The notes below the pieces were generated by a model. It did no database searches and was not told where the DNA came from. It saw only the letters and a program-made list of their open reading frames with translations. From assembly GCF_006345805.1 (NCBI RefSeq), contig NW_021825794.1:1-14520 (forward strand): 14,520 nt of DNA, written 5' to 3'. Below are positions 1-14,520 of the stretch, piece by piece; position 1 is the stretch's first letter, and the number at the start of each line of letters is the position of its first letter. Origin of the DNA: Octopus sinensis. Taxonomy: Eukaryota. The position numbers and the translations under genes were made by a program.

Positions 1-189
1 CTTAACCATTTACATCTCTTCAGGAAACTGTATAACCACCTGATCACTCAAGTAAATATGTAAATCAAATAAAATTTTATACTCCCCAAGAAAACAGGTT
101 ACATAACTGGTTGAAGAATACACCATACAACATAGACGAGGGATCATTGATCTCTCTATAAGACCTACATGGTGAGACATAAAACAATC

Positions 190-790
190 TGGAGCAGGAG
201 GGAATGTAAACTGAAGAACCTTTCAGTCAGTTGGAGGTTCAAAGAAATATCAGTTCATGCATATGGCTGGGAGACGGGAATAAAGGACAACTGGGAGTTT
301 CTATGAGATAGCTTGCTGTGAGTCATAGATCAGGTTTGTGGATAAAGTAAGGTGCAGTAGAGTAGTACATTAGGTAGAACTGTAAATACTAAGGGACTGG
401 CCGAGAAAGATTGGAAGTAAGAGGGAAGAAATAAACATTAAGAAAAGCTGCTGAAACTAAGAGGTTTGCTAATGTTCTGTGATGAAAGAATGAGAGGCTT
501 GATATGCACTGGGGTGCAAAAGAAAGTGTCATTGAGGAAAGGTGTGATGGTAATGGCATGCTTGACTTCACTGATAAGGAGAATAAAGATGCAGAAGTGC
601 TACTAAAGAGGTTGCCAAGTGAAGAGAATGTGTAGGAGAGAAAGAGACCAGCTGTTGAATGTGTTGTTAAGGATAGGAAGGAAGGGAAAGCAACTCAACC
701 AGATGCTAAAGATATCCACTGGTGTAGGATGGATACACACAAATCACTTGCATAATCAATCAGATTGTATAAAGAGATGTCATATCTAAT
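190..790 (+). mobile_element. Heavily decayed RTE-clade LINE remnant (APE-RT linker / RT N-terminus)
   Basis: Manual translation gives stop-broken pieces (AAETKRFANVL*, CDGNGMLDFTDKENKDA, KRLPSEENV*, TQITCIINQIV*) that resemble the linker of the better preserved RTE copy at 4405-5323 (-). Boundaries are approximate. Confidence 0.5.
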
Positions 791-1229
791 GACAGCATGT
801 GGCAAAAACCACTTTGCCTCCAAAAACTAGGTGTATTTGCTCATCAATGCAACATCTAAAAGGTCATCATCCAAACTGCTAAAAATGACTTCATACAGCT
901 CTCGGGTTATTTCACCTTTGAAACTAAGTTTATTGAATTGAATTTTCCTTTGCTTCATAACGTTGATAGTTCTTCGAGCAGTACTGCTGTAAAGAAAGAC
1001 TCTACCATTGCTGCCTGCTTTGCAGTCAACTCCACACCACACTCTTGGCAAACATCTTCCAAGCCTATCTCCTTCCTACCAGTCTTGACAGTCTTCCATT
1101 ACTCTTGAATATTGCACATCAGAAATAGCCACAATGTTCATCAAGCTCTTCATTCTCTCCAGAAATCTCCGCAGAAATCTATCCGGAACTTTGGAAGCAT
1201 GTTACAGTGTGTTGCATCCCAAGAAAGGC

Positions 1230-2190
1230 AACCTTTCTAACTCTACCAACTTTCACTCTATTGCATTCATTGGACATTTGCATATCTAATCCACCCCCGC
1301 TGCTTTGGAGGAGAACACTGAACAGCTGTGAACATTTGAAACTCAAGTGCCTCGTTCTCAATAAGAACAAGAAAGCAGAACTTTTAAGATTATACATTAA
1401 TGTCCTTTTTGAGGTTTTGTTTGGTCTCGAGCCATGCCTGGGCTCACAAGGGCCAATTTCCCGGTTTCTTGGTGTATAGGTTCCCCACCTGGATGCAACG
1501 CCGGTCCGTCGCAGGTGAGCTGCAAGATGCAGGAGGAAAGAGTGAGAGAAAGTTGTGGTGAAAGAGTCAGCAGAAGTTTCGCCATTACCTTCTGCCAGAG
1601 CTGCATGGAGCTTAGGTGTTTCGCTCATAAACACAATCACCCGGTCTGAGATGCGAACCCCCTACTGCGAGTCTGCTGCTCTAACCACTAGGCCATGTGC
1701 CTCCACAGTTTGGTGCTAGTTTCTCTAGTACTTTCCAGATATAGATTTTTGTTAATCACTATTCCCTTCTATTTTCCTGGAAATATAGTTTCAAAGCCTT
1801 TAACCTCTCTCAGGAGCACATTTGGTGTATAGAGCAGTTTGTTTTGAGTATGATTGCCTCCAGTTCATCTTGATAGTATGAACTGACTATAACTGGTTAT
1901 CAATAATTTAGGTGACTAAGAACAACAGTCTTCCAGAAAACAATCATAATCTCTTGTGGTCTTGTTCAAATATCCTTAGAATCCATCCTGCTAATCTTTG
2001 GCCTGTTTTTTTCCAATTTTTTAATAAGTGCATGAAATGATGTATCCTTATTCATTGCAATTCTCAGGACCTCTGCTGTTTCAGGCCTTGGTATTGCAGT
2101 TTCTTTGAGCTGTGTGTCTTCATTTTGTATTGTTGGAGAATTAATTGATGGTAATACTGTACTGAACTTCATATTGTTTTCTCTAGTCCA
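1230..2190 (-). mobile_element. Decayed CR1/L2-type LINE 3' ORF2 remnant, interrupted by a SINE
   Basis: Minus-strand pieces IAMNKDTSFHALIKK, FWKTVVLSHLNY, SSYYQ, ERLKALKLYFQENRRE and RTRHLSFKCSQLFSVL resemble the CR1 RT C-terminal pattern (LxY...WSPY...ERLxxLxLxxLExRR...GPQLFN). Many stops and frameshifts; boundaries are approximate. Confidence 0.6.
1415..1706 (-). mobile_element. tRNA-derived SINE (~290 bp) with a V-domain-like core
   Basis: GC-rich island. The minus strand begins GTGGAGGCACA-TGGCCTAGTGG (A box, 1685-1695), has a degenerate B box GTTCGCATC (1650-1658), a core CACCTGCGACGGACCGGCGTTGCATCCAGG, and ends in an A-rich CCAAACAAAA tail. Confidence 0.75.
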
Positions 2191-2200
2191 GTATGTATAC

Positions 2201-2419
2201 CTGTGGTTTTCAACCAGGGTTCCGTGGAACCTTAAGGTTCTGCAAGTACAGTGCAGGGGTTCCGCAAGAAGTTACAAAACTGCTAAAATAGGCAGTAATT
2301 TTTAAGTCTCCTGTGCAGATATGTGTGCATAAGACTATTAAATTATTGCACAGGGGTTCCTCGAGCCAGTGGAATGTTTCCTTGGGGTTCCGCTCCAGCA
2401 AAAAGTTTGAAAAGCACTG
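2201..2419. mobile_element. hAT (Charlie-like) MITE, 219 bp
   Basis: Imperfect 15-bp TIRs CTGTGGTTTTCAACC / GTTTGAAAAGCACTG. Perfect 8-bp TSD ATGTATAC at 2193-2200 and 2420-2427, fitting the Charlie-type NTNTANAN target. Internal GGGGTTCC subterminal motifs. Confidence 0.9.
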
Positions 2420-3796
2420 ATGTATACAGCATTGAAGTCCTTCTAAAGGCATTTACTATTATTTTGGGTCCTTTTACTGTTTATTTATGTCTTAGTATCA
2501 TCAACCAAATTGATTGGCTTAAGCTATTACAAACAATAGAGGTCTGAAGGCCTATATCACTCCACTGACCTTTCAGATAGAGCACTAATGCTTTTAATGT
2601 GTCACCAGGATTCTTGCAGGCCAATCCTCCTCACCAGGGGGAGTGGCCTTAACACTTCTGCTGTGGAGTACAGGTCTTCTTCTAGTAGAGCACGGTGCCA
2701 GGTATCTTGGTCCTTTGTCATCTTGTCTGAAAGGTTCAGTGTCCTGAGGTCATCCTCCAGTATTTTGTTCCATGTCTTACTGGGTCTCCCTCTTCCATGT
2801 GTCCCATCTACATTGAATGACTGGCTCTTCTTTATGGAGCTGTTGGCATCCATCTACATCACATGACCGAACCAGTGCAGCATTCTCTCTTACACACTGC
2901 ATCTAATTCCTCTTATGCCTGACTTCTCTCTCAATACACTGGCACTCTGTTGAACATGTACACTTATATTACACATCCAGTAGAGCATACTAGCATCATT
3001 CTTCTCTAGCCTTTGCATGTCCTGCCTTCAGGGCCCATGTAGAATAACTGTCCGTATACATGCATCCTACAATGCATCCTACAGAGAAAGAAACCTTTGG
3101 TTGCCAACAGAGGTTAAAGTTCTCTGAATTTCCTCCATCCTGTTCTTATTCTAGCTATCATGCTCTCCATACATTCCCTAGGTAGCAGAAATTATTTGGT
3201 TCCCTAGGTAGCAGAAATTATCCACTACCTCTAATGAGCCACCAAGGCATTTGAGAGAATCAATCTCCTGAGTATCTGTAGTTTTTAAGGTTCCTATGTC
3301 TCTTCCACATATGAACACTACTTTCTCTGATAATCTTCCTATTATTCCGCTGCACCTCTTGTGTATCCATAGCTTACAGTGAGTATGCTGTATGGAATTC
3401 CTGCTTCCACCTTTCCTACAAATTGAGCAGGGCCACCTACCTGAAGGGGTAGGGTCTTTGCACACACATGAAATTTCTCTTCTAGCTCTGATATAGAATC
3501 TGCTATGAGGGCAAGATCATTATCATTTAGCAGTTCCCAGGGTCTGCCAGTCTTGAATTCCTCTGTTATAGTTTGGAGGACAATAATGAAAAGGAGAAGA
3601 CTGAGGACTGAGCCCTGATGAATGCCTACCTGTGTATGAAATTCTTTGCTGTACTCATTAACTCTCGCCTTACTGGCAGCATCTCTATATATGGCCTGAA
3701 CAGCTTTCATAAGCCACTCATCTAACCCTAGCTTCTGCAGAGCCCACCATATCACACATGATACTCTATCAAAAGCTTTCTCTAGATCAATATTGG

Positions 3797-3800
<4 letters not shown>

Positions 3801-3832
<32 letters not shown>
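3801..3832. repeat. (TA)16 microsatellite
   Basis: Read directly from the sequence. Confidence 0.97.
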
Positions 3833-3836
<4 letters not shown>

Positions 3837-3889
3837 CATGATGGGTTTCTTTCAGTTTCCGTCTACCAAACCCACTCACAATTATATAA
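3833..3889 (-). mobile_element. Possible short SINE/LINE 3'-tail fragment
   Basis: CATACATGATGGGTTTCTTTCAGTTTCCGTCTACCAAACCCACTCACAA abuts a (TA)/(CATA) tail. It resembles a cephalopod SINE tail that I recall; not verified. Confidence 0.35.
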
Positions 3890-4242
3890 AATATAATTAA
3901 GATTCAGTTGATTTAGGTACTTAAAGTGAGGCACCTTGCTAGGTTAGTATAATCCGCACACCCAAACAATATTAATTAAATATTGAATATCAAGACTCCG
4001 TACAGGGGTGTTTGCACCTGATATTCCTGCTGTGTGTGCAGACAACGCTTTTTTCTAGAGGGTACCCTATCAAAAGCTTTCTCTAGATCAAAAAAGGCCA
4101 AGTATAATGGTTCTTGGCTAAGTACTTCTTTTGCAGTTGCCTAATTATGAAAATAGTGTCAGTAGTGCTTCTCCTTGGGATGAAACCAGACTGCATTTTG
4201 TCTAGCCTAATTCTGCCCCTAATTGATTGTGCTATAACTTCA

Positions 4243-4404
4243 AATGTTGTTGAAGTAGTCCTCAGAAAGGATTTGTAGAAGTGGTCCATCTGAGTATCTG
4301 CGAGTCTGGTGTGTGGAGCATATACTGAGATAACTGATACAGTTACATCAAAGAAGACTATCCTTAGCTTAACAATTCTATCACATACCCTGACTGCCTC
4401 AATC
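4243..4404 (-). repeat. 162-bp copy of APE segment 5997-6158 inserted in the RT region
   Basis: 161/162 identical by manual comparison (TATCCTT vs TATTCTT). Confidence 0.93.
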
Positions 4405-5323
4405 TCTCTAATTTTCATCATCTGGTCCAGGAGTTTGATGCTTCTATAATTGCTTATATCTAAGGCATCTCCCTTACCTTTATAGCAGCTAACTATAATG
4501 CTGCTACACCAGTCACTGGGTTTTACACCTTCTTAAATAACCTGATTAACTATGCAGGTGACTAGCCTGTATCCTACCTCACCGGATATTTTGAGCATCT
4601 TAGCAGTGACTCCTGATAGACAAGGGGCTTTTCCTGTTTCCATGTCTATAATTGCCTTACCTACCATATTGCTGTCCACTAGGTTAGCTGGTCTCTCTGT
4701 TGGATAAAGGAGACTCCCTTTATCCTAATCATTCTCCACATTCAATAGCCTTGCATAGTAACTCTTCCATGCCCCTTTCTTGTCTGCATCATTAAGTGCA
4801 AGCATACTGTTATACATCCGCACATACTTCTCTCTCACAATATCTTAATTCTCTTTGACACACTGTCTAGCAATCCAGAACACCTCAAGTCTCTGATTTT
4901 CATGCTGTAGGACATTGGCAAGCTTCTTCCTTTCTACTTGTGCCCTAGCTAAATAAACCTGATGTCATGCTTCTCTTTTAAATTTCTGAAGTGATTCTTT
5001 GTTACCCATTCTTTCTAGCTCTGTCTCTTCTCTTTTTTGACCCTGTCAACCTCATTGTTACACTGCCAAGTCACCCTTGATCTGGCAGAGGCTTTACTCC
5101 AACCACAGACTTGGTTTGTCACCCTCAGTAGATTGTCCTTCCAGTGGTTGTCTGCAAGAAATGTCACTCTTTCTTCCTCCTTCTCATCAAAAGCTTCATT
5201 AAAAACACCTCTAAATCTTTGTCTCTTTGAAAGATCTTTGAGCTTCCACAACCTCCTTTTCCATATTGGCTTGCATCTCTGGATCCTTTGGGCCCTAACC
5301 CTGGAGTCACTAACCACTAGCTT

Positions 5324-5516
5324 ATGAATGCCTACCTGTGTAAGAAATTCTTTGCTGTACTCATTAACTATCACCTTACTGGCAGCATCTCTATATATGG
5401 CCTGAACAGCTTTCATAAGCCACTCATCTATCCTTAGTTTCCTCAGAGCTCACCATATCACACATGATACTCTATCAAAAGCTTTCTCTAGATCAACATT
5501 GGTGAATATATATATA
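5324..5516 (-). repeat. ~190-bp direct duplicate of RTE RT segment 3618-3808
   Basis: Both copies run from TGAATGCCTACCTGTGT to TCTAGATCAA(T/C)ATTGGTGAATATATATA with roughly 90% identity and the same TA-tract breakpoint. Confidence 0.92.
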
Positions 5517-5519
5517 TTT

Positions 5520-5729
5520 ATTTAAAAATCTATTAATCTTACATATAAATGTAGACATAAATATATTAAAACATACATATATATGTAAATATATTGAAGA
5601 AGGTTTGAAGTAGTGATGAAAACGAATTTAGCAATTCCTCTTTCTTCAGGGTAACAGGTTTACATTTGCAAGTTGACAAATTATGTTAGGTTTCCTTATA
5701 GATAAGAGGCATGGGTAGGGGAAGAAAGA
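5520..5729. repeat. Rearranged copy of Penelope 3' tail 6460-6790
   Basis: 5521-5550 is about the reverse complement of 6460-6489; 5550-5624 matches 6501-6575; 5634-5729 matches 6695-6790. The ~120 bp between the last two donor segments is missing from this copy. Confidence 0.9.
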
Positions 5730-6170
5730 TTTTGCATTTATGATCATATATCTGTCCCCATGTATGGTGAGGATGTAGTCAATCTGGCTAGTATGTCCCC
5801 CAGATTGATAAGTGATAAGATAGTTGGTAAGTTTTCTGAAGTTGGTGTTGTAGACCAGTAAGTCCTGCACGTCACGAAACTCCAGCAGCCTTGTCCCTTC
5901 CTCATTTCTAGAGCCAAAGCTGTAGCTTCCATGCACACCCTGGGATCCATTGGGATGTCTTCCAACATGTCCATTAAAGTCCCCTGCCACAATGAGAATG
6001 TTGTTGAAGTAGTCCTCAGAAAGGATTTGTAGAAGTGGTCCATCTGAGTATCTGCGAGTCTGGTGTGTGGAGCATATACTGAGATAACTGATACAGTTAC
6101 ATCAAAGAAGACTATTCTTAGCTTAACAATTCTATCACATACCCTGACTGCCTCAATCACTTTATTCATC
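5730..6170 (-). pseudogene. APE (EEP) endonuclease domain fragment of the RTE LINE, frameshifted
   Basis: ORFs 5744..6169 and 5646..5990 overlap in different frames and together give SVYAP...GDFNGHVG...GTRLLEF...SQIDYIL. Confidence 0.88.
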
Positions 6171-6254
6171 CATTTCGCTACTAGTAGAATAGCTACATAC
6201 TCACATATTTATAAATACACACACATATATGTATGTATATAATACATGTGTGTG

Positions 6255-6261
<7 letters not shown>

Positions 6262-6302
<41 letters not shown>
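6262..6302. repeat. (TA)n microsatellite, about 20 units
   Basis: Read directly from the sequence. Confidence 0.97.
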
Positions 6303-6306
<4 letters not shown>

Positions 6307-6624
6307 CAAAAAATAGTAGTATCCGCACCAAACCTGGCGCTGATGCTGCTTTTTTTGATAATTTGACCCATAAACATGACTTTGATTTCAGATGAATTTA
6401 AAGCACAAATATATACAAGATACATTAAAAAATATAAATACATAGACATTTAAAAAAAAATTTATATGTAAGATTAATAGATTTAAAAAAAAATTTTAGA
6501 TGTAGACATAAATATATTAAAACATACATATATACGTAAATATATTGAAGAAGGTTTGAAGTAGTGATGAAAACAAAATAACAGATAGAAGGAGGAAAGA
6601 AATTAAAAATCAGGATAGTTATAA

Positions 6625-6725
6625 TAGGGTGCCAGTGGCTGTTTCTAGGGGTTAATTGCAGGTAAAAATAAGGCGATAAATACCCATTATTTATCAATTC
6701 CTCTTTCTTCAGGGTAGCAGGCTTA
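6625..6725 (-). ncRNA. Candidate degenerate hammerhead ribozyme in the Penelope 3' pLTR region
   Basis: Minus strand has CTGAAGA (6712-6706), a long stem II containing a perfect GATAAATA/TATTTATC hairpin (6675-6695), then GAAAC (6645-6641) and GCCA-C-TGGC. Stem I and a canonical cleavage triplet are not clearly intact. Confidence 0.45.
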
Positions 6726-6884
6726 CATTTGCAAGTTAACAAATTATGTTAGGTTTCCTTATAGATAAGAGGCATGGGTAGGGGAAGAAAGAGAAATATA
6801 TTCCAATAAAATATAACAAGGAATAAAAGTTTGTTTTAAAATATATCTTAGTTCAATTCTAATCAGAGTCACTGTAGTGTAAAA

Positions 6885-7250
6885 ATGTTGGGTAAATTTT
6901 ATGTTTGCATGAAAAAAACCATGTCTGACAATTTGTTAAGTAGCAGTAGATTTTACGTTCGAAGAATGATGAGTGCTTCCCTTATACATAATTTACATTT
7001 ACCTAAATTAGTGTTATACAATGGAGCATTTTAGAGTATATTTTCTCTTCTCTGATTTGAGCTTGTGGATATACCTAGCAAGCATGGTAGTCATTTTATA
7101 TTTAGGATTGTTAAAAGAATAGATATAAGTTTGATATCTACGCTTAAAATCAGTGGCACTACCAATGTATATTTTAGGTTTTGCATCTGGTGTTGATACC
7201 TGACATTTATTAATTCCTGCAAGGAATCATTTACACGACAATTGCATCTT
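6885..7250 (-). pseudogene. GIY-YIG endonuclease domain of the Penelope-like element, frameshifted
   Basis: CNCR is in ORF 7091..7321. A second frame reads STPDAKPKIYIGSATDFKRRYQTYIYSFNNPKYKMTTMLARYIHKLK (IYIG at about 7161-7172), followed by GKCKLCIREALII...LLNK...CKH. Confidence 0.85.
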
Positions 7251-7290
7251 TTTCTTCTTTTTTGCTGTTTCATTTTTAATTTGAATAAAT

Positions 7291-8011
7291 GGATCTTTTC
7301 CTTTTGAATGGCAGTTTTCAACTTTTAAACTTCGTATACTGGTAGAATGTGTCAAAATAAAACATTTTTTTCTCTTGGCTTTCTTGAGAAAATTGTAATT
7401 TGTGAGTTTAACATAGTTTAATTTTTCGAATTTTAGCCAATCGATGGCCTCTATTTAGCTAAAATCATTTGCTGCGTCTAAAACTGAGACAACATACTGT
7501 CACTGACCCTAACACTAACCCTAACCCTAAATTTTAGCCTTTTGTTTTTTTTTTCTTAATTTTTAAATTAATTTAATTGTTACGCGTATGTCTAAAATTA
7601 TTCGTTTTGTTTTTGTTTTGAGATACACATGTATTGTTTAAACTATTTTCCATTGCTTAAGAAAAAAAAACAAACGAAAGGCTAAAACGAAAGCAATGGA
7701 AAATAATTTAAACAATTAACAAACAAAATAATTCTATAATTTTATACACACGCTTTCCAAACGTAAACATAACAGTGACAGGATGTTGTCTCAGTTTTAG
7801 ACGCAGCAAATGATTTTAGCTAAATAGAGGCCATTGATTGGTTAAAACTCGAAAAATTAAATTAGGTTAAACTTATAAATTACAATTTTCTCAAGAAAGC
7901 CAAGAGAAAAAAAATGTTTTATTTTGACACATTCTACCAGTATACGAAGTTTAAAATTGTTTAGTTAACTAGAAATTGTGTTGAAAACTGCCGTTCAAAA
8001 GGAAAAGATCC
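7291..8011. mobile_element. Non-autonomous foldback DNA transposon, 721 bp, ~215-bp TIRs, 8-bp TSD
   Basis: TIRs 7291-7505 and 7773-8011 begin GGATC and end GATCC; about 95% identical apart from a 23-bp extra in the right arm. TSD GAATAAAT at 7283-7290 and 8012-8019. Confidence 0.92.
7507..7530 (-). repeat. Telomere-like (TTAGGG)4 tract, one unit variant
   Basis: CCCTAA CACTAA CCCTAA CCCTAA immediately inside the left TIR. Confidence 0.85.
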
Positions 8012-8699
8012 GAATAAATTTGGAGCCGGGATATTAGTTTGTAGGCCAATAGTGTTATTTAAATTATGAATATCAATTTCAGATTGAGCAGTTGTATTGG
8101 AACCACAAGTTACATGTGTTTTATAGTTGGGGAATTGATCAAGTTTCTTATATTTATCTAACGCATTGGATTTAAAGGTTTGTGCGCTAATTTTTGATTT
8201 ATTAATAGAAGATATTATCGATCTCAAATTAGGAGTTGTAGAGAAACAAATTTTCACAGAAGTTTTATTGAATATGGAATAGTATTTATGGTATTTCGGA
8301 AAGTTTGTTTTCAAAATTTTAATGAAAAGTTTTGGTAACGATTTTATTTGAAGGGAAAAGTGAGGGGTGTACCAAATAATTTCACGTTTTTTTTATTTAG
8401 ATACGTTATCTCCCCTGAATTTATACATTATTAATTAATAAATTATGTTAAATTATTTTATAACCTTTTATTTTTGAATTAATTAATGTATAAACTTAAT
8501 TTTTTTCTAGATAGATATATGTATAGAATTGTGTATATTTGTTGTTATATTTTTATTTGGAGTGTCATACAAATTGAATGTAAATTTTTGATATGGCCAG
8601 TGTGGTCTTGTGTGTAATTTAGATTGTAAAGTTTTTAATTGATTTTCAGTGGAGGCAGATTTAATAGGCTTAGCATTCTTTTCGGAAAATGTTTGCTAT

Positions 8700-9485
8700 T
8701 TTTGTTTTTAGTATAGTATTATGTATATAATATATTTTTTCCTGGAAACCACTTAACTGTAATACTTGTTTGTAATGTGGAATGTGGTTGTTAAATATTG
8801 TCTCGTTAACAGATAAATTTGAGATTCTTATTAAAATTCTGGTTACAATACTTTTTATGGTGCTTGTAGGATGATTGGAGAGAACATTGATGTACTGTAG
8901 TGTTTAATTCGGCTTATGATATATTTGGTATGACTTGGTATTTAAATTCCATGTAACATTGAGAAAGTCGGCTATTTTGGTGTCAGTCTCAAATTAAATG
9001 TGCAAGTTATAATAAATTTTGAGAAATTTTAGTATCCTTTTTTTAGTGCATTCAACTGCTGGTTTGGATAATCTGGTAGTAGTGAAAAGGGAATCATCTC
9101 TGTATAATCTGCCTGCTATTTCAAGGAAGTTCGATTCAGTTTGTGATAATAAAAATAGGCCAACCAGATCTGTAATTTGTGCAGGGTCAGATGAGCCCAT
9201 TGTTATATCAAAAAAAGTATGTAAAGTAGTCCTGGTCCAATTTGTGTTTTTCTGGCAGTTAATATAATGTCGGTATCATGTTGGGAAATTGTTGTAAAGT
9301 TATGACCAAAGATTAAAACTTTATTAAGGAGGATTGGTGAAATTGAAATGTAATAGTTTGAAATATCAAATTGTATGAAATGAGTATGATGTTTATCCTT
9401 AATCAATAAAACCAGGTAATGACATCACTGATTGAATTCCATAAGGGAAGTTTTATGTTAGTTCTGATCTTAGGAATTATTGTAT
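8700..9485 (-). pseudogene. Penelope-type reverse transcriptase, disrupted
   Basis: ORFs 9203..9406 (FIQFDISNYY) and 8994..9200 (MGS...LYRDD), plus the thumb region SNHP...LSGF. Confidence 0.87.
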
Positions 9486-9491
9486 CCAGTA

Positions 9492-9610
9492 TACCAGATT
9501 ATCCAAAGCAACAGTTGAACGCACTAAGAAAAGGATAGAAAAATTTCTCAAAGATTACTATAGCTTGCACATTTTATTTGAAACCGAGACTAATATAAAT
9601 GAATTTTTTA
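9492..9610 (+). repeat. Inverted, diverged Penelope RT fragment (matches ~8965-9078)
   Basis: TACCAGATTATCCAAAGCAACAGTTGAACGCACTAAG versus the reverse complement TACCAGATTATCCAAACCAGCAGTTGAATGCACTAAA; roughly 80% identity overall by eye. Confidence 0.8.
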
Positions 9611-9658
9611 TTTTTATGTAGTTTGTTTTTCGTTTCTGATGCAATAAATACTAAAATA

Positions 9659-9796
9659 GTTATCTCCCCTGAATTTATACATTATTAATTAATAAATTAT
9701 GTTAAATTATTTTATAACCTTTTATTTTTGAATTAATTAATGTATAAACTTAATTTTTTTCTAGATAGATATATGTATAGAATTGTGTATATTTGT
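9659..9796. repeat. 138-bp direct repeat identical to 8405-8542
   Basis: GTTATCTCCCCTGAA...GTGTATATTTGT; no differences found by manual comparison. Confidence 0.92.
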
Positions 9797-9867
9797 ATGT
9801 TGTAAAAATATATATATAGTAATTAAAAAAAAAGAAGTACATTAACTCGTGTATATGGAAGTGTATG

Positions 9868-9891
9868 TATATATATATATATATATATATA
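9868..9891. repeat. (TA)n microsatellite flanking the first Helitron 5' end
   Basis: Read directly from the sequence. Confidence 0.95.
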
Positions 9892-10400
9892 TCTCTTATT
9901 ATAAAAGGCAGATTTTAGCTGCCTCCCTTTGGGAGTTATACAAATCTACAATATAAGATTTCTTCAATTACAATTTACCTAGCATTTTTAAGAGTACAAT
10001 GCATCGCGTCATGCCAGGTCCAGTTTTTAAAATTTAAACTCCAATTAAGCAAAATTTACAGAAAACTCACATTCTGGTGTGTGTGTCAAATGCTTTTCTT
10101 AGTCTGGTTTACACCACACGCAAACGCACACACACAGTGGGCAACGAATAAAATGAAAGTAAATAGCGACAGAGTGATTTGAGCAAGACTAAACTGAAAG
10201 TGTTTAAACCACTACTCAAAAAATAAAAAAACACAGCAAACAGAAACAAATAAATACATAACCATTTAATCCTCACACAACTTCTTCAATTAGCATTTAC
10301 CTAAGATTTTTCAAAGTACTCCATTCGCTCATGCCATAATATATTTCTTTCAATTTCACCCCCAATTAAGACAAAATTCGAGAAAACTCAATATTTTAAC
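9892..10400 (+). mobile_element. Non-autonomous Helitron family A, copy A1 (5' part; own 3' end not seen)
   Basis: A|TCTCTTATTATAAAAGGCAG start. About 98% identical to 11432-11673 over ~243 bp, and homologous to 12244-12800. Confidence 0.75.
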
Positions 10401-11059
10401 ATATCACTCCGAAAGCATTGATGTACATGTGTGCGTGCGTGAGTGTGTGTGTGTCATTCCTCACACACACGCATACACATACATATACAACTACATACAA
10501 CTACATACACATACAACTACATACAAACACGTGTGTGTTTGTTATTAGTAAAAAAGGCGCAAAAACACAACTCACTTATCATTCCAACACATTTGCAAAG
10601 ACACACGGAGGACAGAAAAGGTAAATTGGTTTTTATTTTACTCTGTATATATTTTATTATATAATATTATATATAGATATATGTATATATAATTGCAGTA
10701 TGAAACAGTGTTTATGTATAAACAGACGACACTTATATATAGTTACCAAGCCGCCCGAATTTGCCTATTCATATTTAAATGAGAATATCAGAGCAAATCT
10801 CTTTAGTACATTCGTGAAAACACGTATTATACTTCGTAAACACTTCAACTAGTTTTGTACAAAAATCGAAGTGTAATTTTAATTCCGTGAATTATGGGAG
10901 ATTTTTTTCCGAAATTTGTTCCTATTGTGTTTTCAAAATTTTTAATTCTGACAAAAAATGGATACGAATTTCATTATATCAAGCAGCGAGTCAGAATTCG
11001 AAGGATTTTCTACTGAAGACCTTCATAAATCTAACTCTATGACTGAAAAAAAAAAAGCA

Positions 11060-11431
11060 TCTTTATATAAGAGTGAAGTTGTGTGTCTGTCTCCTACGAT
11101 TTAGATTCCTAACTACTCCCACATTTTGCGGTGCAGTTTAACCAAAAGCGGGTATCTTATAGTCGTGATTCATATCGAGCCCTTCTGGGTATTAGCGTGC
11201 ATCTACGATTTAAAAACAATTTACCATCATATTTTTCCATTTTAATGCATTTTTTTCGCTTTTATATAAGGGAAATAACTCTCTAAAAATATCTACGATG
11301 TGTCAACGATTTAAAAAATATTTACCTTCATTTTTTTTCAATTTTTAATGCATTTTTTGGCTATAACTCTCTAAAAATGCTTATATAGTTATTTCCCTTA
11401 CAACCCGAGCAACGCCGGGCGATACTGCTAG
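11060..11431 (+). mobile_element. Complete 372-bp non-autonomous Helitron family B, copy B1
   Basis: A|TCTTTATATAAG 5' end; GC hairpin CCCGAGCAACGCCGGG (11404-11419); CTAG at 11428-11431 followed by T; no TSD. Contains two ~90-bp internal subrepeats. Confidence 0.88.
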
Positions 11432-12243
11432 TCTTATTATAAAAGGCAGATTTTATCTGCCTCCCTTTGGGAGTTATACAAATCTACAATATAGGATTTC
11501 TTCAATTACAATTTACCTAGCACTTTTAAGAGTACAATGCATCGCGTCATGCCAGGTCCAGTTTTTAAAATTTAAACTCCAATTAAGCAAAATTTACAGA
11601 AAACTCACATTCTGGTGTGTGTGTCAAATGCTTTTCTTAGTCTGGTAACACCACACGCAAACGCACACACACACAAAGGGAGCGAATTGTTTCACTGATG
11701 CTATCACCCTTCTCCTCCTTTGTCTTTGCAAGTTTGCAGCTATCGTAAAATTTTGTTGTATACCCAATTGAATATTAGCTAATAACCCATTTTTTATAGC
11801 GATGTTTGAACAAAATTTTAATAATTTTACAGAAAGTTACCCAGAATAACAAATTCTATCGTAAAATTTTGTTGTATACCCAATTGAATATTAGCTAATA
11901 ACCCATTTTCTATAGCGATGTTTGAACAAAATTTTAATAATTTTACAGAAAGTTACCCAGAATAACAAACGAGCCCTTCTGGGTATTAGCGCGCGTCTAC
12001 GATGAGTCTACGATTTAAAAAAAAATTACCATATTTTTCTATTTTAATGCATTTTTTTCGCTTTTATATAAGGGAAGTAACTCTCTAAAAATATCTACGA
12101 TGTGTCAACGATTTAAAGAAAAATTTACCTAATTTTTTTTCAATTTTTAATGCATTTTTTTGCTATTTTTTGGCTATAACTCTCTAAAATGCTTATATAG
12201 TTATTTCCCTTACAACCCGGCAGCGCCGGGACGATACTGCTAG
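11432..12243 (+). mobile_element. Chimeric Helitron: family A 5' end joined to family B 3' end
   Basis: TC start; family A sequence to ~11739; 114-bp duplication 11740-11969; family B sequence from 11970; perfect hairpin CCCGGC-AGC-GCCGGG (12216-12230); CTAG at 12240-12243. Confidence 0.82.
11740..11969. repeat. Tandem duplication, 2 x 114 bp (period 116)
   Basis: 11740-11853 vs 11856-11969 differ by one substitution and are separated by a TT spacer. Confidence 0.95.
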
Positions 12244-12456
12244 TCTTATTATAAAAGGCAGATTTATCTGCCTCCTTTGTCTATTATAGAAATTACAATA
12301 TAGGATTTCTTCAATTACAATTTACCTAGCATTTTAAGAGTAGAATACATCGGGTCGTGCCAGGTACGGTTTTTCAAATTTCACCCCCAATTAAGCAAAA
12401 TTTCGAGAAAACTCACATTGTGGTGTGTAAGTGAAGTGCTTTTCTTAGTGTGGGCT

Positions 12457-12460
<4 letters not shown>

Positions 12461-12498
<38 letters not shown>
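12461..12498. repeat. (CA)19 microsatellite
   Basis: Read directly from the sequence. Confidence 0.97.
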
Positions 12499-12503
<5 letters not shown>

Positions 12504-12887
12504 AGTGAAATGCTTCACTCATGCTATCACCCTTATTTCTCCTCCTTTCTCTTTGCAAGTGTGCAACGATTAAAGTGAAAGTATTTATATAAAACGAGAG
12601 AAGTGTACCTTAAACCACTACTCAAAAAAAAAACAACACAGCAAACAGAAACAAAACATAACGATTTACTCCTCACACATTTTCTTCAATTAGAGTTTAC
12701 CTATGATTTTTCAAAGTACTTCCATTCCGTCATGGCATACAAAATTTCTTTCAATTTCACCCCCATTTCAGAAAAAATTCGAGAAAACTAAATATTTTAC
12801 CATTTCACTCTTTCACTCTGCATATTACTCCCACTTCCTCTTTACACACATAGACACGCAAATATATAAATAAAATTGTAAGCTAAC

Positions 12888-12940
12888 GTGCGTGTGTGTG
12901 TGTGTGAGGGTGTGTGTGTGTGCGTGTGTGTGAGTGTGTG
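12888..12940. repeat. Imperfect (GT)n microsatellite
   Basis: Read directly from the sequence. Confidence 0.93.
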
Positions 12941-13169
12941 ACAAGGATGAGCCAGTCAGACTGGTCATCCTTTTTGCTAGATCACCTATGGTCTTATATG
13001 CTACACCACTGGTTTTCAGTTCATATTAATCAAATTAATATTCACAACAAGAAGGACTATTCATTATAATACATCAGTTCCACACATTTACCCTGGTTCC
13101 ATTTCGGACAACTGCACAAACATTTGCCATTTCACACATGTATGTAAACAAATTCCTTTCTTAAAAATT

Positions 13170-13527
13170 TCAATTCATACAAAGTTTTTTAGGACGAATA
13201 TAAGATCTAAAGTATATCCAAGTAGCAGAAAGATCGCCCAAAAGTGTATATAGATATTTAAATGTATTTATATATTCATCTATACACATGTATGTATAAT
13301 GTGTGTGTATATTTTCCATAGAGGTAACATTTCACTCCATACAAAGTTATTTAGGACGAAAATAAGATCTAAAGTTATCTCTAAGAAACAGAAAGATCGC
13401 CCAAAAGTGTATATAGATATTTAAATGTATTTATATATTATCTATACACACATGTATGTATAATGTGCGTGTATATATTTCCATAGAGGTAACCATTCAA
13501 TCCATACAAAGTTTTTTAGGACGAAAA
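13170..13527. repeat. Tandem repeat, ~163-bp unit, ~2.2 copies
   Basis: CATACAAAGTT(T/A)TTTAGGACGAA recurs at 13176, 13338 and 13503 (periods 162 and 165). Confidence 0.92.
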
Positions 13528-14366
13528 TTTTATATATAAAAGAAAGGTTGTGTGTCTGTCTACTCCGATTAGATTCCTAACTACTCCCACATTTTGCGAT
13601 GCAGTTTAACCAAAACCGGTATCTTATAGTCGTGATTCATATCGAGCCCTTCTGGGTATTAGCGCACGTCTACGATGAGTCTACGATTTTACAAATAATT
13701 TACCATCATTTTTTTCCATTTTAATGCATATTTCTTTAAATAAAGGGAAGTAACTCTCAAACTTCACCAATATGCGTGCTCATATGCGACGTAATATCAC
13801 ATCAGCAGCATTTCCTCACACCCTCCTTGCACTTGGCGAAGGCAAAATACCAGGGGATGAATGGTAATATTGCCATCGATTCCATTTGTACCATTGTTAA
13901 GACGCCTTCTGATCTCAGAGATGCAGTGTTCCCAGATCTACAAGCTAATTATCAGGATATATGGATTGGATTGGCAAAAAGGCTATTACTGGCCCCGAGG
14001 AATAAAACTGTTCACCATATTAATGATGAAATGCTAAAACTCATTCCTGGGGAAGTCTATGTATATCAGTCTATCGATACAACTCCTGACCCAGAGGACG
14101 TCATCAACTATCCAATAGAGGTACTCAATTCCTTTGAGCACCCCGGACTACCACCACACTTTCTCAAACTTAAAGTTGGTGCCCCTATAATGCTCATCAG
14201 AAATTTGGTTCTCCAAAACAATGAAATGGCACATATTGATCGTTAAGTCTTATCTCCCACCGTAAACTATATCAATATTTGCCTGAATAATCATCATAAT
14301 TCAGTGCAATCATTAACAGTACTTTCAAGCTATTCAGCCCCGAGCAACGCCGGGCAATTCTGCTAG
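13528..14366 (+). mobile_element. Helitron family B long form (B3), an internal-deletion derivative with a helicase fragment
   Basis: The 5' ~230 bp match B1 (5' TC degenerate). Hairpin CCCGAGCAACGCCGGG at 14339-14354; CTAG at 14363-14366 followed by T. Confidence 0.85.
13760..14245 (+). pseudogene. Pif1-like (SF1B) Helitron helicase fragment, frameshifted
   Basis: TNMRAH...LLALGEG in an upstream frame, then VFPDL..NY, LAPRNKTVHHIN, YQSIDT, EVLNSFEHPGLPPHFLKLKVGAPIMLIRNL and a frameshifted NGT. These are classic Helitron RepHel helicase motifs. Confidence 0.92.
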
Positions 14367-14520
14367 TCTATATAAACAGCAAAATGTCTGTGTGCGTGTC
14401 CTTATACAATCCACAGTTTTTAGTTAGAGGGCTTGCACTTTCTATGGTCACTCAAAAACCCATCAAAGGGTGGTCGTGCACATCTTTACATTTCCCCAGT
14501 CACCCTGCAAAGTCATTAAA
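14367..14520 (+). mobile_element. 5' end of a third Helitron-like family (C), running off the window
   Basis: TCTATATAAACAGCAAAATGTCTGTGTGCGTGTC begins exactly after the CTAG and has the same TC / TATA-rich / GTCTG layout as family B. Confidence 0.6.

Follow-up and report, generated by a model that had tools for sequence, protein, structure and literature searches.

We examined a stretch of 14,520 nucleotides from Octopus sinensis (contig NW_021825794.1, positions 1 to 14,520 of the forward strand; assembly GCF_006345805.1), hereafter the window, in which Helitrons assigned to three families, A, B and C, are stacked head to tail: at three places the CTAG that closes one element is followed at once by the TC that opens a different one. 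Direct reading of the sequence places the exact joins CTGCTAG|TC at 11431/11432 (...CGGGCGATACTGCTAG|TCTTATTATAAAAGG, with g at 11431 and t at 11432), at 12243/12244 (...CGGGACGATACTGCTAG|TCTTATTATAAAAGG) and at 14366/14367 (...CGGGCAATTCTGCTAG|TCTATATAAACAGC), and at each of them a B-type 3' end, made of a hairpin and CTAG, passes into a Helitron-like 5' end with no base between. An initial annotation of this DNA had proposed the joins at these coordinates, and the reading bears it out, as do the counts. The 9-mer CTGCTAGTC occurs 3 times in the window against 0.05 expected, and at least 3 copies were reached in 0 of 200 shuffles. TC follows 4 of the 41 CTAG sites in the window, and 3 of these 4 sites are the joins. 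The region 11060-14520 holds 350 AT dinucleotides, and the junctions nonetheless fall at element termini. The stacking of joined Helitrons is confirmed as real and beyond chance.

The elements involved can be followed from left to right along the plus strand. The first, A0 (9894..10455; alignments and self-BLAST, 3' limit approximate), is a solo family A copy that lies outside the coordinates covered by the initial annotation and is the fourth A copy by our count. Its 5' end, TCTTATTATAAAAGG, adjoins a (TA)14 tract plus TC, with no B copy upstream, and no hairpin or CTAG was found at its 3' side. A0 is 98% identical over 243 bp to 11432-11673, in the copy called A1 below, and its portion 9894-10409 aligns with A2 at about 75% identity. 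The first stack then opens with B1 (11060..11431; alignment, hairpin fold and reading of the flanks), a complete non-autonomous Helitron of 372 bp with the 5' end TCTTTATATAAG and a 3' end formed by a hairpin and CTGCTAG; its 5' 223 bp align with B3 at 84%. Joined to it is an 812-bp chimera (11432-12243; self-BLAST, alignment and Tandem Repeats Finder, TRF), with an A head, a middle segment X and a B tail. The head, A1 (11432..11739; alignment, self-BLAST), comprises the first 308 bp of family A and is truncated at its 3' side; X (11740..11969; TRF, self-BLAST) is a tandem pair of 116-bp units, 99% identical, for which self-BLAST found no further match in the window, and is probably captured DNA; and the tail, B2 (11970..12243; alignment and fold), is the 3' 274 bp of family B, lacks the B 5' end, and has 96.4% substitution identity to 11176-11431 of B1. 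The third member of the stack, A2 (12244..12980; fold, hairpin scan and alignment), is a complete family A element of 737 bp with a 3' end of its own, an 11-bp bulged hairpin followed by TTTTTGCTAG. From 12981 on, directly after this end, a search that allowed 3 errors against the A, B and C heads found no Helitron head.

A spacer (12981..13527; TRF) separates the two stacks and contains a 163-bp tandem repeat in 2.2 copies (TRF, 13167-13528). Its third unit is broken, at ...GACGAAAA|T, by the insertion of B3 (13528..14366; alignment, self-BLAST and fold), an internally deleted derivative of a protein-coding B element, which begins with TT instead of TC, probably a mutated end, closes with a hairpin and CTGCTAG, and carries a frameshifted and truncated remnant of a Pif1-like helicase at 13769..14207. 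B3 is joined in turn to C (14367..14520), whose Helitron-like 5' end, TCTATATAAACAGC..., was recognised by 5'-end similarity and of which 154 bp are visible before it runs off the window. The six Helitron units (A0, B1, chimera, A2, B3, C; 9894-14520) share one orientation, as would be expected under strand-specific targeting of element ends.

The assignment to Helitrons comes from both coding and terminal sequence. Read through its single frameshift, the remnant in B3 matches residues 1217-1357 of Helraiser (7lcc) with E 2e-16 and the Pfam domain Pif1_2B_dom with E 5e-11; it covers part of the helicase only, and no Rep domain was found in the window. Judged by the Helraiser and Pif1_2B matches, B is Helitron-derived. 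TC opens A0, A1, A2, B1 and C, with TT in B3; all four 3' ends finish in TGCTAG with hairpins 8-12 nt upstream; a host A stands at the left edge of both stacks (11059 before B1, 13527 before B3); and the 3' flank of each of the three B ends is the T of the next element. Apart from two flanks described below, the locus therefore has the canonical Helitron structure, in view of the helicase remnant, the TC heads, the CTAG tails, the subterminal hairpins and the left-edge host A. That these ends delimit mobile units can be told from their contexts. The A 5' end TCTTATTATAAAAGG starts at the identical base in three copies (9894, 11432 and 12244) and follows two different upstream contexts, (TA)14 plus TC or a B 3' end; the B 3' end has two downstream partners, and the B 5' end two upstream contexts (11060 and 13528). 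The window thus holds 3 A heads, 3 B tails and 2 B heads, each in at least two contexts, and because the boundaries recur in different contexts they are true termini of mobile units and not internal points of one long repeat.

The hairpins fold upstream of each CTAG as the initial annotation had said. The folding free energies (dG) are -4.5, -7.4 and -4.2 kcal/mol for B1, B2 and B3, respectively. The hairpins at -4.5 and -4.2 have z scores of about -0.5 to -0.9, and the B2 hairpin, CCCGGCAGCGCCGGG followed by CTGCTAG, reaches z -2.9. This variant, CCCGGC-AGC-GCCGGG, has a perfect 6-bp stem, against the bulged stem of the other B copies. The A2 3' hairpin is the most stable (dG -10.5 kcal/mol, z -5.1), with an equally good one in 0 of 200 shuffles. 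As a side observation, the B2 hairpin (12217-12231) has lost the bulged A and carries an A-to-G change relative to B1 and B3, and looks like a compensated terminator variant.

Family A also carries a hairpin at its head, an 8-bp stem (AGGCAGAT-TTT-ATCTGCCT) lying 12 nt from the first base, at 11444-11462, 12256-12273 and 9906-9924. Together with the palindromic CTAG of the B element upstream, it mimics a 3' end of the minus strand with the layout hairpin-N12-CTAG, and it might affect cleavage at the junction. We considered whether a genuine minus-strand 3' end lies there (8-bp hairpin at nucleotides 13-31, plus CTAG) and rejected this, since A0 has no CTAG at that place and A2, read in that direction, would open with CTAG instead of TC. 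The three B copies in turn share an internal head-like motif, T[T/C]TTTA[T/A]ATAA[G/A]GGGAA, at the same position (11260, 12062 and 13733), with no CTAG end before it; it may be a chance match or the relic of an older internal head.

The nature of the joined partners differs in part from what had been proposed. The claim that different families are joined stands in so far as the elements are non-identical, which also upholds the view that the arrangement is no concatemer of a single element. Over their first 50 nt, however, A, B and C are significantly alike (p <= 0.005 against shuffles); since the 5' ends are alike and TGCTAG closes both types of tail, the "families" are best described as related non-autonomous derivatives. 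From this likeness of their ends, one transposase could plausibly serve A, B and C. Likewise, three B-type 3' ends are indeed joined to heads, as claimed, but they do not represent three clean B insertions: of the family B element thought to end at 12243, no more than the 3' 274 bp are present, as the tail of the chimera with the A head. The layout of this chimera (A head, captured X, B tail) looks, from its sequence, like that of a chimeric Helitron formed by end bypass, and similar elements that combine one Helitron's head with another's tail have been described in maize (Dong et al. 2011, PMC3288121) and silkworm (Han et al. 2013, PMC3789558). Many genomic copies went into the definition of those elements; the octopus chimera is seen once, in the window.

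Exact head-to-tail Helitron junctions have precedents of several kinds. Du et al. (2008, PMC2267711) reported an exact CTAG|TC join between two unlike maize Helitrons (r1 type), a G/T junction with no host A, and read it as the outcome of consecutive insertions, either at the host A plus the resident T, the canonical target, or at the non-canonical G|T. The octopus locus is alike in that CTAG is joined directly to the TC of an unlike element. The maize case is one pair of gene-carrying plant Helitrons, scored for presence and absence by polymerase chain reaction (PCR) across inbred lines, whereas here three joins lie within 3.3 kb of a single genome and connect short non-autonomous elements of animal type, one of them chimeric. 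Perfect head-to-tail junctions and tandem arrays of Helitrons in the bat Myotis lucifugus have been attributed to rolling-circle replication (Pritham and Feschotte 2007, as cited in PMC2267711 and PMC5876387). As those citing papers describe them, the bat arrays likewise show exact 3'-end/5'-end junctions with no host A, but they are tandem repeats, unlike the dissimilar neighbours in the octopus stacks. Here X is absent from both B1 and A2, B1 has no A part and A2 no B part; because B1, the chimera, A2, B3 and C differ in content, a same-element concatemer of the bat type does not describe the locus. Besides maize, a fungus also provides an earlier case of unlike Helitrons joined exactly: in Metarhizium acridum three Helitrons stand in tandem (Chellapan et al. 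2016, PMC5148889). These differ from the octopus stack in being Helitron2-like elements with terminal inverted repeats, all of one family. A biochemical parallel comes from Helraiser, whose purified transposase forms and precisely cuts the plus-strand junction of the right and left terminal sequences in the circular intermediate (Grabundzija et al. 2018, PMC5876387). This junction has the same layout as the genomic CTAG|TC joins, and the B3 helicase remnant is homologous to Helraiser; it is, however, episomal, brings together the two ends of one element and was obtained experimentally, while the octopus joins are chromosomal, connect the ends of different elements and are known from sequence alone.

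We consider that the locus represents a same-orientation stack of related non-autonomous Helitrons, produced by separate integrations, each placed precisely at a resident Helitron's terminal nick site, and we give this reading a probability of about 0.5. Helitron integration and the initiation of transposition use the same chemistry on an A|T bond, and for this reason the bond by which a resident element's first T is attached to the host A is at once a canonical target and a site that the transposase recognises. In the proposed sequence of steps, the transposase would open the A|TC bond at the resident 5' end, with the host A on its left and the element's first T on its right, as it also does when transposition starts, and the CTAG-3'OH of the incoming element would then be joined to that T, giving hostA-[TC...CTAG]-[TC...] with no spacer. 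A2 would have arrived first, the chimera (11432-12243) would have inserted at the head of A2 and B1 then at the head of the chimera; separately, B3 would have landed at the head of C. The chimera itself would be an end-bypass product, with its A head, captured X and B tail. The argument that a host A followed by the first T of a resident Helitron forms a canonical A|T target had already been put forward for this DNA; its logic is sound, and it is one of the two readings published by Du et al. (2008, PMC2267711). The order of events and the side that was targeted are what we infer from the arrangement of the elements; any family-wide preference, including that of family B for the 5' ends of other Helitrons suggested by the initial annotation, would be conjectural.

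Several observations weigh against this reading. The B|A block at 11176-11743 aligns through the join to 11970-12570 with no indel at the junction (84% with gaps, 611 columns), and the step in divergence along this alignment is placed with a log-likelihood ratio (LLR) of 9.26 at 11469 and of 8.89 at 11534, about 100 bp inside A. Two flanks are non-canonical: A2 is followed by A, not by the T expected of a canonical founder insertion, and the solo A0 is preceded by C, not A. The proposed order of insertion and targeted side come from a single locus. In maize, a PCR survey of inbred lines did not settle the targeted side (PMC2267711).

The last points bear on the possibility that the opposite side was the target. 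Elements headed by A or C would then have inserted at G|T behind the 3' end of a resident B, the transposase cleaving after CTAG, and the stacks would have grown rightward from B1 and B3 as founders. The final sequence would be identical to that expected from insertion at A|TC; since the product does not depend on the side, and a host T, which is not seen, would be expected beyond the last element in either case, the window sequence cannot tell the two apart. In maize, the left element of the pair stands alone in some lines, as would fit a later arrival of the right one (PMC2267711), and at the octopus locus all three joins have a B-type 3' end, with the sole A-type 3' end (12980) having no Helitron head after it. 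Against this stands the need for a non-canonical target dinucleotide three times over; moreover, here too the T that the host should supply at the end of the stack is missing, since A2 is followed by A. We regard insertion at G|T as improbable.

The continuous alignment of the two B|A blocks raises the question of whether their joins are independent. A single B|A composite may have arisen once and multiplied, as a rolling-circle dimer or by local tandem duplication; a deletion with X as filler would then have taken away A1's tail and B2's head, and conversion by A0 would have raised the divergence between A1 and A2. Both B|A joins would in that case go back to a single event, and the window would hold two independent joins. 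The alignment with no indel at the junction favours such a history, as does a change point that is not uniquely at the join. So does A0, which lies 1.5 kb away and resembles A1 up to a (CA)n tract, where the similarity ends as a conversion tract might; and exact tandem Helitron arrays are known in bats and plants. The substitutions, however, are distributed unevenly between the two halves: B1 and B2 differ at 9 of 250 sites (3.6%) and A1 and A2 at 34 of 304 (11.2%; Fisher p = 7e-4), a three-fold difference, and a change-point scan likewise detected heterogeneous divergence (permutation p = 0.0005). A1 groups with A0 (98%), not with A2. A step sited exactly at the join was rejected as the description of these data, 11469 and 11534 fitting nearly alike; because 11534 fits nearly as well as the join region, the separate histories of the two halves are not pinned to the junction. 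A plain duplication of the B|A block is disfavoured by the uneven divergence and by the solo A0, 98% identical to A1, and is unlikely. The composite history would need four steps (the composite forms, it dimerises, a deletion brings in a 116-bp filler, and conversion follows), whereas a 5' end, captured DNA and a 3' end are the normal architecture of a chimeric Helitron, so that X needs no special pleading if the chimera inserted as a unit. In addition, the third join has a different partner, C. We therefore think that multiplication of one composite is rather unlikely. The simplest account of the sequence differences would be that a young B1 and a young chimera came to adjoin an A2 of a different subfamily, with the joins made separately.

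The weak B hairpins (dG -4.5 and -4.2 kcal/mol) would fit another route, in which the chain arrived whole, as a Helitron with several termini that was co-mobilised by read-through of the bulged B terminators, the joins having been made elsewhere. Multi-termini Helitrons are common in maize, where they make up 28.7% of HelA and derive from nested or adjacent elements (PMC3288121), and new silkworm Helitrons have formed by the merging of two others (PMC3789558). Arrival in one piece would nevertheless only move the origin of the exact joins to another locus; the 3' flank of the chain is not T, and the chain is seen in a single copy. We find such a history very unlikely. Finally, the region is dense in repeats, including the two 116-bp units at 99% identity, and repeats could have been wrongly concatenated in the assembly. 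The joined copies, however, differ by 4-11%, the joins lie at biologically defined termini and not within shared sequence, and three different partner pairs are involved, which makes an assembly artefact highly implausible.

Insertion at the A|TC of resident elements, the reading we favour, can be extended to a stronger proposal. In some bacterial single-strand transposons, target choice is set by the cleavage site of the enzyme itself. By analogy, the Helitron transposase of this lineage might strongly prefer the ends of resident Helitrons, either the A|TC nick site or an existing CTAG|TC junction that mimics the circle junction, and same-orientation trains of unlike elements would then grow by end-stacking; we advance this tentatively and think it possible but doubtful. 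Helitrons have been reported to favour insertion near other Helitrons, and their target choice, like the origin of chimeric and multi-ended forms, is still argued mainly from patterns in genomes. If a family repeatedly landed at the ends of other Helitrons, this would be evidence from nature that resident ends serve the transposase as targets. Such end-targeting would account for clustering, for arrays in one orientation and for the way composite elements arise, and end-stacking would be a ready source of chimeric and multi-termini Helitrons. The present locus is another clear example of the pattern first reported in maize in 2008, for which the explanation has also already been published, and is not proof of a preference.

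Searches beyond the window gave a rough outside control for the B terminator. The 17-mer CCCGAGCAACGCCGGGC had 119 hits in metagenome contigs, mostly chance bacterial matches, the pattern being short and GC-rich. Five contigs of JAAUXU01 (L010, L047, L064, L083 and L111), from a different eukaryote, carry a true Helitron 3' end with the hairpin CCCGAGCAACGCCGGGC followed by CTGCTAG, and all five copies have ordinary, unrelated flanks that start with T, with TC in 0 of 5. The same hairpin is also present in L038 and L043. These eukaryotic contigs of a metagenome assembly are GC-richer, and the sequence upstream of the hairpin in them is unrelated; the terminator motif is therefore conserved across distant hosts. 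A DNA pattern scan of genome contigs returned two hits, of which the one that was read is a chance bacterial sequence and the other lies in a Ruegeria genome, and three scans of viral contigs gave no match. In a protein search with the helicase remnant of B3, a single relative was retrieved, 73% identical and located on a GC-rich ENA contig from another organism; two open reading frames (ORFs) of the window had no record in the protein collection.

The sequence surrounding the Helitron cluster is also rich in repeats. The (TA)14 microsatellite and TC adjoin the start of A0 within 9864-9895. TA-repeat footprints after Helitron excision have been reported in maize (Li and Dooner, as cited in PMC10095026), and the tract could mark the place of an upstream element since lost, or the target may just have been AT-rich. 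Just upstream of the cluster lie a 138-bp direct repeat (8405-8542 and 9659-9796, 100% identity) and a 125-nt inverted repeat (8954-9078 and 9492-9616, 81%). Further to the left, a tRNA-like stretch at 1440-1700 received no tRNA call by ARAGORN, and degraded fragments of a retrotransposon reverse transcriptase occupy 2600-6170 on the minus strand. The reverse-transcriptase region is internally duplicated (3615-3827 and 5321-5533 at 92%; 4243-4410 and 5997-6164 at 98%), and the database proteins closest to its ORF, which carry PF00078, are at most 72% identical (66% for the top-scoring hit). At 3838-3885, adjoining a (TA)n tract, is a tail like that of a short interspersed element (SINE; reverse complement ttgtgagtgggtttggtagacggaaactgaaagaa), which we take to resemble an abundant octopus SINE. 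Between this region and the cluster, a long inverted repeat at 7323-7956, with arms of about 150-180 nt that are 91-100% complementary and a core that starts with a telomere-like run, ccctaaccctaaccctaa, near 7507-7530, looks like a foldback element or a miniature inverted-repeat transposable element.

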